The translations under genes and the position numbers were made by a program. Below are positions 11,288 through 25,829 of a stretch of 64,000 nt of DNA, one piece after another. Origin of the DNA: Scyliorhinus canicula (taxonomy: Eukaryota); the NCBI RefSeq assembly GCF_902713615.1, contig NC_052158.1:35071990-35135989 (forward strand), given 5' to 3'. Position 1 is the stretch's first letter. Every line of letters begins with the position of its first letter. Under the pieces are notes generated by a model, which was given only the letters and a program-made list of their open reading frames with translations, was not told the origin of the DNA and searched no databases.

Positions 11288-11404
11288 GAAGGTTGGACAG
11301 CCCCGGGTCAGCCCGCAGAATCAGCCTGCCAGCCGAACTATTGCTACAGGTGGCCATCCTTGCAGGAGCCGTGTTCGCCTCATATTTGAACGGCTCCCAA
11401 CGAG
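11288..11404 (+). CDS. Hydrophobic leader/TM exon of butyrophilin-like gene (RLDSPGSARRISLPAELLLQVAILAGAVFASYLNGSQR), phase 1-1
   Basis: Acceptor ttttgcatctcttccag, donor gtgaga at 11405, 117 nt, open frame joins in phase to the IgV exon (..SQR-G-PFTVKGP). No Met inside and an in-frame TAA at 11257, so an upstream coding exon is required. Confidence 0.7.
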
Positions 11405-11926
11405 GTGAGACTGGTGCAAGTAATTTCCTGTGAGACAGGAATCGTGGGTGTGTGTGTGTGTGTGTGGCTAACTAAGCACTGCCATTGACACAGAACCTCA
11501 GCAAAACCCCACCCACCCATCAGAAATCCCATAACACCTCCCCCCCCGCCCCCGACACACAACCCGATGGAACATACTCCAGACCCGCCCAACTGACGAC
11601 AATTCCACCTCTCGAGAACACAGCTCCTGGGTGACTCTGAAAACATCGCCAACCGCACCCTGGTCACAATTTCATTTGTCTGCTGTGCCTTAACAACACT
11701 TTGAAATTTCAAAGCCACTCCAATTCTGGCCTCTTGTGCATCACCACTTTACGCCTCCCTGCAACTGGTGATCATAATCTGCCTGGGCCCCAAACTCTGA
11801 TATTCCCTACCTAAACTTCCCCACCTCTCTGACTCAATGACCCTTTCTACACAGCTTCTGACTCCCCTGTCCTTCCTGGTTTGATTACCCTTATTCATAT
11901 TGCGTTATATGGCATAATGGAAATAT

Positions 11927-12776
11927 TGTGAACCCAGACTAGATCCCAACAGTAGCTCGGATACTGGACAAAAACCCCTGTATTTTATTTAGTTTGTAAG
12001 ACTGGGAGGAAAGGATACTTCACCCCAGAGGTGATTTCACGCACAAATAGGGATATTGTATATTAAAACAAACTTTTTTTACTAACACAGCATTAATAAC
12101 CTTAACCTTATAAATACAAATAGCTTTATACAAATAGTTTAGCAACGTTTATCAATACACAATGACACAATAACCCTTAACTGCTATCTTTATCTCCACT
12201 CAAACAACACCCGCCTCAAGCCACAATCCACTTTTAAATACAGTTAGTAGACCCAGGAATACTTGCTGTTAAGAGATGTCTTGGGTAAACACCTTTGGGA
12301 AAGCAATATCCTTTAAGAAGCAGCTTCAGATTGTTGCCTGTCACAACCTGCTGTTTAAACTGCCTATCTGCTCACAGGCAAGTCTTGAACTCAATGTCTT
12401 GAGATCAGCTGCTTCTGGTCTGTCCCCAGTCAAATATTTAATTGAACTATTCGGAAAGAAGCTGCTAGTCTTTCACTGAACTGTATTGTGAGAAGCCGCT
12501 TCTCTTCTGTTCACATCCTATTCTAAAACTAAACTCGTACTCCAGAGACTGCTTCAGCATCTAGCTGCACGCACTAAGCTGAGCACAATGGCTCTAATTA
12601 TCTACTCCACAGGGAACCCTCTTAATATAAACAAAAGTCCACATTTTTATGATGCTTTAATTGCACCTCTGGCTGCAAGACACCTTTCAAACTAGGATTT
12701 TTAAAAACATGACTGCAGCAGTCACACACACCACCCCAGGCGTTTAACACTTACTGCACCAAATACATATTATACA
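11927..12776 (-). mobile_element. Solo LTR (Gypsy-like), 850 bp
   Basis: TG..CA termini, 4-bp target duplication ATAT (11923-11926, 12777-12780), AATAAA near the minus-strand 3' end. Confidence 0.72.
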
Positions 12777-14139
12777 ATATATCTGAAATTTATAGGATGT
12801 GACCACTGGCTCGACGAGTGGAACCCGAGGAACTTGTGGCGGCGGGGATCCGCGCCCAACCATTGCCCTGCGTCACTGAACCTCTGCCCTGAGGGATCCA
12901 TTCCTCGTGGCATTACACTGAGACAGGCGGCAATCATTGGATGGATTGTCAACCTCGACATCGAACTATACCTGCTTACCCAGCCATGTGAATAAAAAAG
13001 TAAATCTGTTTCCAAATAACTCCATGGGATCTTACAACCGGGCGAAGCCTCTGTGCTCTTTCACGTCCAACCTCCAGTGTGATTGCAATTTTACTCGCCC
13101 CCGATATTGGAGAGGCCATTCTGTCAACATCCTGGGCCTGAATCTATGGATTTCTCTCATAAACATCTCTGCCTCTCTTTAACCCTCTCTCTTCCACTTT
13201 TTATATTCATCCTGGGGATGTGGGCATCGCTGGCTTGGCCAACATTTATTGCTCACCCTTAATTGCCCCCTGAGTAGGTGGTGGTGAGCAGCCTTCTTGA
13301 ACCAATGCAGTCCATGTGGTGTAAATACACCCACTGCGTTATTAGGGAGAGAGTTCCAGTATGTTGCCCCAGCGACAGCGAAGGAACGTCCGTGGTGAGG
13401 ATGGTGAGTGACTTGGATGAGCATCTCCAAGTTGTGGGGTTCCCAGGTATCTGCTGCCCTTGTCCTTCTAGATGGTAGTCATGAGTTTGGAAGGTGCTGT
13501 TGAAGGAGCATTGGTGAGTTACTGCAGTGAATCTTGTGGATGGTACACACGGCTGTTACTGTGTGTCAGTGGTGGAGGGTTTGAATGTTTGTGGAAGGGG
13601 GAGCAGTCAAGCGGGCTGCTTTGTCCTGGATGGGGTTGAGTTTCTTGAGTGTTGTTGGAGCTGCACTTATCCAGGCAAGTGGGGATATTCCATCACACTC
13701 CAGACATGTGCCTTGTAGATTTTGGTCAGGCTTTGGGGAGTCAGGTGGTGAGTTACTCGCCGCAGGATTCTTGACCTTTGACCTGCTCTTGTAGTCACAG
13801 TATTTATATGGCTAGTCCAGTTCAGTTTTTGGTCAATGGTAACCTACAGGATGTTGCTGGCAGGGTTTCAGAGATGGTAATGACATTGAATGTCAAGGGG
13901 GAATGGTTAGATCCTCTCTTGTTGGGATGGTCATTGTCTGGCACTTGTGTGGCATGAATATTACTTGCCATTTATCAGGCAAGTCTGGATATTGTCCAGG
14001 TCTTGCTGCATTTGGGCATGAGTTATGGGACCGCACGGCCTGTTTAACATTTGCCACTATCGCTGTTTGTCACCCAAGTAGTTCTGTGTGTGTAGCTTCA
14101 CCAGGTTTATACCTCATTTCTTAGGTATGCCTGGTGTTG

Positions 14140-23136: not shown

Positions 23137-24479
23137 GTAAGCGGACAGTGCAGGAACGGAGTGAGGTACTGGGGAGGTTTTGCTGTGACTTCCCAACACA
23201 CACACACACTGCTCGGGTGAAGAAAACTGGCCAGGCCTCAAAGGAGCAGGGCAAATGGTAGCAAAGTGGTCATATTACTGGACTAGCGAGTCAGAGGCCT
23301 AGACTAATGACCTACAGACATGAGTTCATGACTAAATGAAGGAAAAACGCAGCTGCGACGCCTCCGTAAGTTGAAGAGTCTCCTAACGTTCGCTGTCCGA
23401 ACTCTCATGCGGCTGACCGAAGGGGAGAGTCCAGCTTAACCGGTCCGCACAGCAGAGAAAGCGAGGGTAGCTATCAGAGAACCAATTGGAAATGCGTTTC
23501 CAAAGAATGTAATTCTGCAATAATATGTACAAGTCTACCTGGTAGACCTGTGGCTCTGGTGTTGGCCTCCAAGGCCAGATGCCAAATTGTAAATTATGCT
23601 TCAATTGTACAAAGCCTTGGGCAGACCCCACCTGGGGAACTAGATTTAGTTCCGCGCACTGCACCTTTAGGAAGGGTATATATTTAAAAAAACTTAGAGT
23701 ACCCAATTCATTTTTTCCATTTAAGGGGCAATTTAGCATGGCAAATCCACCTAGCCTGCGCATCTTTGGGTTGTGGGAGCGAAACAACAAGGGGAGAATG
23801 TGCAAACTCCGCACGAACAGTGACCCGGAGCCGGGATCGAACCTGGGACCTCGGTGCCGTGAGGCGGCAGTTCTAACCACTGTGCCACCGTGCTGTCTTA
23901 GGGAGGGTATATTGACGCAGGTTCACCAGAAAGGTGGCAGGGTGAAAAGGGTTCAATGATGAGGACAGGCTGCAGGAACATCTGTTCCCCCGACTTCAGA
24001 ATGCTGAGATGTGACCTCCATAGAATCCCTACGGTGCGCAAGGAGGCCATTCGCCCCATCAATTCTGCACCAACCCAACTGGAAGAGCACCCTACCTAGG
24101 CCGACTCCAGTGCCCTATTCCCAAAACCCCACCTAACCTGCACATCTTTGGACTGTGGGAGGAAATTGGAGAACCCGGAGGAAACCCACGCACACACGGG
24201 GAGAAAGTGCAAACTCCACACAGTCCCCCAAGGTTGGAATTGAACCCGGTTCCTAGCGCATTGAGGCAACAGTGTCGAGAGGATTCGAGTGGAAGGATAG
24301 TTTGCAACAATTTGCTCGGGTGGACAAGTTAAGAACAAAGGGCGATTGAGTTAAAACATTGATTTGGGATGTTCAGGAGGGAAATCGGGAAGCACATTAG
24401 CTCACAAGAGGAGAGCAGAAATCTATAAGTTGTTTCCTCAAAATGCTGTGGATGCTAGATTTGGGGGGGGGGTGGGGGG

Positions 24480-25175
24480 AGAAACATAGAAACTGGGAAA
24501 AAGAGTGGGCCATTCAGCCCTTTGGACCTGCTCTGCTGTTCATTATGATTGTGGCTGATCCTCCATCCCAAAGCCATATTTCCGCTTTCTCCCCATATCC
24601 CTTGATGCCGTTAAAATTTAAACAAAATCGATCTCTTTCTTGAACACTTTCAGTGTTTTGGCCTGCACAGCCTCTAGTGATAGAGAATTCCACAGGTTCA
24701 CCATCCTCTGAGTGAAGAAATGTCTCCTCATCTCAGTCCTGAATGGTCTATCCTGTATCCTGAGACTGTCCCCTGGTTCTAGATTTCCCCAATCAGGAAA
24801 AACATCCTCCCTGCATCTAGTCTGTCCAGACCAGTTAGAATTTTAGACGTTTCAATCAGATCGCCTCTCCTCCTTCTGAACTCCGGTGAATAGAGGCCCA
24901 TTCGAACCAATCTCTCCTCATAGGACAGTCACGCCAACCCCGGTATCAGCCTAGTGAACCTCCGCTGCACTCTCTCTGTGGCAAATACATTCTTTCTGAG
25001 GTAGGAGACCATAACTGCACGAAATACTCCAGGTATGGTCTCACCATGGCCCTGTATAACTGCAGTAAGATATCCCTAATTCTGAACTCAAATCCTCTCG
25101 CAATGAAGGCCACCATACCATTTACCTTACTAATTGCTTGCTGCACCTGCCTCTCCACTTTCATTGACTGGTGTA
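24480..25175 (-). mobile_element. CR1 LINE fragment
   Basis: LLQLYRAMVRPYLEYFVQLWSP in ORF 24946-25164, plus 3' tail. Confidence 0.85.
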
Positions 25176-25292
25176 CAAGGGAACAGTTGAAGTTTTAAAG
25201 ACTATTCATCGATAGATTTCTTTCCTGAATTGGAGTTAAATTAATTGTTTGTTTATCTCTCTCTCCCCCCCCCCCCTCTCTTTCCATTTCAG

Positions 25293-25829
25293 TTTCTTTG
25301 ACTCTGGATCCAGACACAGCGAATCCTTGGCTCATCCTGTCAGACGGGGGCACCAGCGTGTCGGACAGTAACGAGCGGCAGCATCTCCCTGAAAATCCCA
25401 AGAGGTTCCTGGTCAGTCACTGTGTGCTGGCCTCTGGGGGCTTTGCCGCAGGCAAGCACTACTGGGAGACGGAGGTGGGCTATAAGGACACCTGGGACCT
25501 GGGCCTGGCCAGCGAGACGGTCAGTAGGAAGGGCAAGGTCAAAGGGGTGCCCGGGGCTGGGCACTGGAGCCTGAGCCTCAGCAAGACGGAGTACCAGGCT
25601 GTGGACTCGCCACCCCGGGCCCTTGCCGCTGGGTCAGAACCCGACAGTGGTTGGCGTTTACCTCAACTACGAGCGGGGGCAGGTGTCCTTCTTCGACGCG
25701 GGGGGCCAGCTGCACCTGTATACCTTCGCTGTCAACTTCACCAAGAGGCTGTATCCCTTCTTCTGCCCGGGATTACACAACTGGCAGAAGAACGCTGAAC
25801 CCCTCCATCTTCGCAACCGCAAGCCATAG
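25293..25829 (+). CDS. B30.2 (PRY-SPRY) terminal exon of butyrophilin-like gene, with a +1 frameshift near 25622
   Basis: Acceptor tttccatttcag. VSLTLDPDTANPWLILS..GKHYWETEVG..WDLGLA in one frame, then VVGVYLNYERGQVSFFDA..LYPFFCPG in the next frame to TAG at 25827-25829. 537 nt is one base too many for a phase-1 exon. Confidence 0.9.

Follow-up and report, generated by a model that had tools for sequence, protein, structure and literature searches.

A probably butyrophilin-derived gene of sharks and rays with two N-terminal helices and a predicted extracellular B30.2 domain, as seen in a second catshark copy

Butyrophilins have been studied as sensors, in which an intracellular B30.2 domain is coupled to an extracellular immunoglobulin (Ig) face that addresses gamma-delta T cells. 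The canonical members considered here (BTN1A1, BTN2A1, BTN3A1 and a butyrophilin of the shark Heptranchias perlo) possess an IgV domain, a BTN-type IgC domain and a C-terminal PRY-SPRY (B30.2) domain, all on phase-1 exons; a small EW.RIR-type exon precedes that for the B30.2. B30.2 domains that act extracellularly are known from secreted proteins, the snake-venom vespryns such as ohanin and the stonefish toxins; these lack both Ig domains and a hairpin anchor, show no sign of shared descent with the gene described here, and serve as a precedent only. We have analysed 64,000 nucleotides of the Scyliorhinus canicula genome (NC_052158.1; ‘the window’, within which all coordinates are counted), carrying a gene that shares each of the canonical features just listed, but differs in having neither a transmembrane helix between IgC and B30.2 nor a run of heptad exons, and in encoding two N-terminal helices instead of a plain signal peptide; its B30.2 domain, cytosolic in canonical butyrophilins, is predicted to be extracellular. 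We consider it likely that this is one copy (‘copy B’) of a butyrophilin-derived gene, whose product would combine an N-terminal hairpin anchor with an exoplasmic IgV-IgC-B30.2 chain, that the layout derives from the canonical one, and that a one-base frame break found in the window is an assembly error sooner than a lesion. The features on which this reading draws are as follows.

2943..3050, plus strand: TM1, the first helix exon; 108 nucleotides, phase 1-1, from the exon scan
11288..11404, plus strand: TM2, the second helix exon; 117 nucleotides, phase 1-1
15453..15791, plus strand: IgV exon, the sole one in the window; Pfam V-set, 2e-8
20007..20291, plus strand: IgC exon, BTN-type; Pfam C2-set_3 (BTN3A2-like IgC), 1e-18; covered by spliced contigs
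20292..22968, no strand given: intron with dispersed repeats, removed whole in transcripts; no usable hydrophobic exon
22969..23007, plus strand: 39-nucleotide exon, encoding DFLPHAQFRVSEA; no helix
23110..23136, plus strand: 27-nucleotide exon, encoding EWSRIRSFQ
25293..25829, plus strand: PRY-SPRY (B30.2) exon, stop codon TAG; Pfam PRY 2e-21, SPRY 9e-11

The last five exons form the all-phase-1 chain proposed in the initial annotation, which is borne out by splice borders, phase and Pfam domains: each exon has a polypyrimidine-AG acceptor and a GT donor, in one common phase, with two bases completing the codon of the previous exon, and the junction peptides agree with those quoted earlier. 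That annotation overlooked three things: that the B30.2 exon has a frame break, that two hydrophobic exons lie at the 5' end (2943–3050 and 11288–11404), and that the gene is a second copy. The first of the two hydrophobic exons encodes RLYPSGVSSWSNHVW, a hydrophobic helix with YRQ after it, and the second an Arg-rich loop followed by ELLLQVAILAGAVFASYL; their products are identical to residues 13–47 and 49–86, respectively, of the catshark protein XP_038673049.1. The TM2 exon occupies the position directly 5' of the IgV exon—the ‘leader’ position of butyrophilin genes—yet the hydrophobic segment found there is internal, being preceded by exon 1 and the TM1 exon. Exon 1 itself (MSAVGF...) was not found in the window. 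A hydrophobic, ATG-initiated open reading frame at 540–645 (MENSPSLTVRLAINPKPVLFLCLVVLYLWWVFTSPG), ending at a phase-1 GT, was rejected as an exon, none of the orthologue models having anything equivalent. We also observe that the IgV exon is flanked by a 36-base run of G (14393–14428) and a 31-base run of C (15844–15874).

The domains themselves are of butyrophilin type; a B7-like IgV is followed by a BTN-type IgC, and the PRY-SPRY is C-terminal and lies on one large exon, its frame in the window being broken by one base. Among sequences in the PDB, the Ig ectodomain matches CD276 best (5e-31), with BTN1A1 (5e-21), BTN2A1 and BTN3A also matched, and the closest solved structure to the B30.2 domain is that of BTN3A1 (4e-41), with TRIM21 at 1.5e-36. 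Ig and PRY/SPRY are the only Pfam families seen in the orthologous proteins, without RING, B-box or coiled coil, which sets them apart from TRIM proteins of class IV; the TRIM coiled coil that is present in the window lies on the opposite strand, as part of a neighbouring gene.

Between the IgC and B30.2 exons we find nothing that could serve as a membrane exon. A hydropathy scan of the open stretches in 20292–25292 (Kyte-Doolittle scale, flagged at a cut-off of 1.4) returns a single strongly hydrophobic stretch within 20292–22968, at 22837, which sits inside a dispersed repeat with a read depth of tens of thousands and no usable splice sites; the exon scan yields no phase 1-1 hydrophobic exon with acceptable splice sites anywhere in 20292–25292, thus upholding the earlier statement that none is open in 20292–22968. 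Logan contigs from three runs, each of a different study, contain the joints 20289 to 22967 and 23006 to 23109 (both GT..AG), such that the IgC exon is spliced directly to the 39-nucleotide exon—the junction for which an RNA check had been proposed. In one contig of 906 nucleotides the IgC exon spans 7–289 and the B30.2 exon 357–893, with the intervening 67 nucleotides fitting the 39- and 27-nucleotide exons; the resulting linker from IgC to B30.2 has 22 residues and is non-hydrophobic. These transcript joints cover the gene from IgC to B30.2, the TM1, TM2 and IgV exons being modelled from sequence and proteins; raw oligo-dT reads from a fourth RNA run have zero depth on the exons and are uninformative as to transcript ends or strand. 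The chain without a transmembrane exon is what is transcribed, and the single helix between IgC and cytoplasmic tail that marks a type I protein is absent from the intron, the transcripts and the orthologue models alike.

It might be argued that a membrane exon has been overlooked, or is isoform-specific, and that we are dealing with an ordinary type I butyrophilin. Low-depth contigs do continue beyond the donor of the 27-nucleotide exon into the intron, and the 102-nucleotide intron between the two small exons (23008–23109) is a multiple of three in length and free of stops in frame, so that its retention would add 34 residues. These are, however, too weakly hydrophobic for a membrane helix (the best 19-residue window scores ~1.1 on the Kyte-Doolittle scale, by hand, and goes unflagged at 1.4), and the open frame is probably due to chance (~6%). 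With the dominant contigs of all three studies passing directly from the IgC to the 39-nucleotide exon, and a helix at this point in 0/10 other species with a full-length model, we regard an overlooked exon as highly improbable, and the idea as largely refuted already. Isoform models that skip the membrane exon do occur in other species (Callithrix BTN2A2 isoform X4, sterlet and gar), with IgC joined in frame to the pre-B30.2 region and no helix between; in the Callithrix example IgC is joined to the ELRWRR exon, the frame being kept—something made possible by every exon sharing phase 1. Those isoforms are alternative, or possibly mis-predicted, and their parent genes have the membrane exon, whereas the catshark gene has none there and the helix-less state of genes of its type is fixed across sharks and rays.

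Full-length models from ten other species have the same order throughout: exon 1, helix, Arg/Lys loop, helix, IgV, IgC, short linker and PRY-SPRY. The sharks and sawfish among them are S. torazame, Mustelus asterias, Cetorhinus maximus, Heterodontus francisci, Hemiscyllium ocellatum, Pristiophorus japonicus and Pristis pectinata (an N-truncated isoform), the rays Mobula hypostoma, M. birostris and Hypanus sabinus. Chiloscyllium plagiosum, Heptranchias perlo and the skates Leucoraja erinacea and Amblyraja radiata are represented by partial models, which brings the total, with S. canicula, to about 15 species. No model that reaches that far shows a hydrophobic stretch between IgC and B30.2, so that the junction, whose conservation in other sharks and rays had been put forward as a check, is conserved there; the linker itself follows the pattern [DE]-[FL]-LPH-x-QF-x-V-x-E-[AT]-EW. 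At NCBI the orthologues are labelled as butyrophilin-like, BTNL2/9-like or ERMAP-like. The suggestion of an undescribed elasmobranch architecture is likewise supported, by a layout conserved across sharks and rays and by our finding no paper that remarks on it: searches on extracellular or secreted B30.2/SPRY proteins, which did not cover every journal, gave, among the papers listed, nematode SPRYSEC effectors. A search with the IgV exon alone returned nothing, but was limited to proteins of similar length and so excluded full-length relatives; a query of the ESM Atlas with 88 N-terminal residues yielded nothing usable.

With no transmembrane exon between them in transcripts or orthologue models, the Ig domains and the B30.2 domain must, by this gene model, share one side of the membrane, as had been proposed. 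Which side is suggested by the N-terminus. In every full-length model the loop between the two helices contains 4–6 Arg/Lys residues, compared with 1–2 in the N-tail and 0–2 in the 15 residues after helix 2. The positive-inside rule would keep this loop cytosolic, making a ‘hairpin’ anchor of the two helices the most likely arrangement, with the short N-tail and the whole IgV-IgC-B30.2 chain placed exoplasmically; tethering by N-terminal helices, one of two outcomes that the initial annotation had envisaged, is in our view likely given the two hydrophobic 5' exons and their Arg/Lys-rich loop. The protein would then read, in order, short N-terminus, two hydrophobic helices with the Arg/Lys-rich loop, IgV, IgC, the 22-residue linker and PRY-SPRY. 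In the Ig domains the cysteine pairs are kept, IgV has one further invariant pair, and N-glycosylation sequons are shared, all of which would fit an exoplasmic location. An AlphaFold2 model, built on a shallow alignment of 11 rows and used here solely for the two N-terminal helices, places these at residues 24–51 and 61–84, the Ig domains also being confidently predicted.

The other outcome would have helix 2 act as an internally cleaved signal peptide, releasing a soluble IgV-IgC-B30.2 protein. Helix 2 lies exactly at the canonical leader-exon position and is followed by small residues (VFA then SY in sharks); moreover, a predicted isoform of Mobula birostris (X2) omits exactly the TM1 exon (36 residues), leaving helix 2 as the sole, signal-like, N-terminal hydrophobic segment. 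The candidate cleavage motif is not, however, conserved in position among sharks, rays and skates, and the conservation of helix 1 in every full-length model suggests a use for it. We therefore think secretion by this route distinctly unlikely, and prefer the hairpin anchor; in the M. birostris isoform, a signal-like helix 2 would likewise leave the C-terminal part exoplasmic.

How might such a layout have arisen? Among relatives that do not belong to the family, the exon following IgC opens with D-x-FFP-xx-S-x-W and continues into the membrane helix. Over 75,609 residues of these relatives, the pattern [FLY][FLY]P.{1,4}S.W occurs 19 times just after IgC versus 4 times elsewhere. In the catshark gene this motif (D.FFP..S.W) is present but displaced: as LYPSGVSSW, in the shark members of the family, it opens the TM1 exon, ahead of a helix and RRLD, and as DFLP—a stalk motif of the canonical DFFP type—it opens the 39-nucleotide exon of the window copy, with no helix after it. 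The 27-nucleotide exon (EAEWSRIRSFQ-V, then SLTLDP across the junction) in turn resembles the canonical pre-B30.2 exon (ELRWRR..., ESDWKK...), whose counterparts are ESDWKKICECKV followed by SVTLDT in Heptranchias and ELRWRRTFLHAA followed by DVVLDP in primates. Heptranchias perlo, besides its family member, also has a canonical butyrophilin complete with signal peptide, membrane exon (DDFFPTVSGW, then helix) and B30.2. For the argument on origin we rely on the positional count of the motif and not on a shuffle test of the TM1 exon against canonical membrane segments, which was inflated, as shuffling destroys the hydrophobic block and the TM2 control also beat most shuffles.

Because a canonical shark butyrophilin exists, and the TM1, 39- and 27-nucleotide exons carry canonical motifs, the layout looks to be derived rather than an intermediate of fusion. 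In the simplest reading, which we propose here, the helix-coding part of the membrane exon may have been deleted at its original site in a canonical gene, and a further copy of the exon inserted at the 5' end: helix 1 would be the relocated membrane exon, a move permitted by the shared phase of all exons, and the 39-nucleotide exon the ‘stump’ of the original. The opposite idea, raised in the initial annotation, was that B7-like Ig exons are here caught in the course of fusing to a TRIM-derived B30.2 exon, in its primitive form at a stage that preceded insertion of a membrane exon; the same canonical butyrophilin and motifs speak against it. In its favour, a B30.2 tree puts the family outside the canonical butyrophilin clade (support 96/93), on the side of the window's two TRIM B30.2 exons, and TRIM genes flank the gene. 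Against this, the shark canonical butyrophilin with its membrane exon groups with those of bony vertebrates, the family stem and ray branches are long enough for the family's position to be a rate artefact, and the tree contains no bony-vertebrate TRIM sequences. Indeed, both of the B30.2 trees we built have long branches, misplace the rays inside the sharks and lack those TRIM sequences, and do not settle the source of the B30.2. We consider a primitive stage improbable, and retain the derived origin.

The window copy is not the only one in the catshark. A search with the IgC exon against 1.84 billion representatives returned XP_038673049.1 of S. canicula at 98% identity: a protein of 874 residues, labelled ‘LOW QUALITY PROTEIN: hemicentin-1-like’, whose N-terminus (MSAVGFFRPPSG) is followed by two hydrophobic segments that map to the window exons at 2943–3050 and 11288–11404. 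It contains four IgV repeats (residues 88–539), all mapping to the window's single IgV exon; S. torazame has one IgV. The conceptual protein of the window is 97–100% identical to XP_038673049.1 and 92–95% to the S. torazame orthologue. The two catshark copies are alike in their 5' helix exons, IgC, linker and B30.2, as well as in having a head-to-head TRIM neighbour; they differ in that XP_038673049.1 has four tandem IgV domains versus one here, lacks Glu33 and reads through the stop. The window represents a second copy of the catshark gene, with one IgV exon.

In this copy the B30.2 exon begins in one frame and stops in another, owing to one extra base at 25620–25624. Where the window reads GCCCTTGCC (25617–25625), the transcript contigs read GCCCTGCC in two sets and GCCTTGCC in one, both in frame and both encoding SPPRALPLGQ; the extra base is missing from 3/3 contig sets. 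The window sequence at this point looks like a merger of two alleles differing by C/T. In a word search across the break, a weak test of 6 sampled words only, none of the DNA or RNA runs contained more than 4/6; the 2019 DNA runs, possibly of the source animal, are included in that result, and the same proportion was reached by RNA runs from a study with contigs free of the extra base. On balance the break is quite probably an error of assembly or consensus rather than a real lesion.

Several points weigh against the reading that we have set out. With respect to the copy itself, two or three substitutions (20121, 20150, 25481) are common to the RNA contigs and the four-IgV paralogue; should the contigs stem from that other copy, as they may, the frame break in the window could be real. 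The contigs carry the paralogue states Phe38 and His63 in 3/3 runs and Ile48 in two, the window-private Ser38 and Tyr63 appearing in 0/3 contig sets, together with the window-copy states Glu33 and TAG stop; as such they are not assignable to either copy. Among the proteins returned by our searches there was no annotated one of ~495 residues from the window copy. Taken with the break and the 97–100% identity of the copies, this could mean that the window copy has recently become a pseudogene, or is a haplotype wrongly retained as a duplicate, and that the four-IgV copy is the expressed, intact gene. We find this somewhat unlikely: the splice sites and every other exon are intact, the contigs show the TAG stop and Glu33 and not the corresponding states of the paralogue protein, the broken sequence resembles a merged pair of in-frame RNA alleles, none of the runs held all 6 sampled words across the break, and the one-IgV structure fits the S. 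torazame gene (495 residues). With respect to the B30.2 domain, the skate and Heptranchias models stop short of it, and in Mobula and Hypanus it is very fast-evolving, being 40–42% identical to that of sharks on very long branches, with a PRY part so diverged that Pfam lists no PRY. This suggests loss of the domain or relaxed constraint in some lineages and, in view of both the rapid change and the missing domain, its role may be dispensable. With respect to topology, the whole of our prediction is derived from the positive-inside rule and the absence of a helix; the AlphaFold2 model has a predicted local distance difference test score (pLDDT) of 58 overall, and low confidence in the linker and PRY, as the alignment is shallow.

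We are evenly poised on the wider proposition that a lineage predating the split of sharks and rays inverted its topology, the membrane exon passing to the 5' end and the PRY-SPRY becoming a constitutive extracellular module beside two Ig domains. Were it so, the PRY-SPRY could act as a recognition domain, surface-bound or secreted. A B30.2 on the outside would mean a domain that works in the oxidising extracellular space as part of a vertebrate immune-type protein, and a natural case of topology change through same-phase exon shuffling. A 2026 survey identified butyrophilins in cartilaginous fish through BLAST with BTN3A1, and describes a transmembrane domain only for squamate models (PMC12841164); the cartilaginous-fish ‘butyrophilins’ so counted may not, if our reading is true, share the canonical mechanism.

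Elsewhere in the window, a TRIM-type gene lies on the minus strand, with an intact PRY-SPRY exon of 176 residues at 30835–31365 (-) and a coiled-coil exon at 37877–38233 (-); its B30.2 and that of the butyrophilin-like gene share 45% identity. A second intact PRY-SPRY exon, at 56680–57207 (-), has 49–50% identity to the B30.2 of the family, equal to the closeness of the sawfish orthologue. Between these two PRY-SPRY exons is a G-rich minisatellite of ~8.7 kilobases (40728–49476), formed from ~340 copies of a 25–31-nucleotide unit (GGCGGGGGCTGGGCGAGTGCCTGGG), with a GC content of ~0.8 and a strong G skew.

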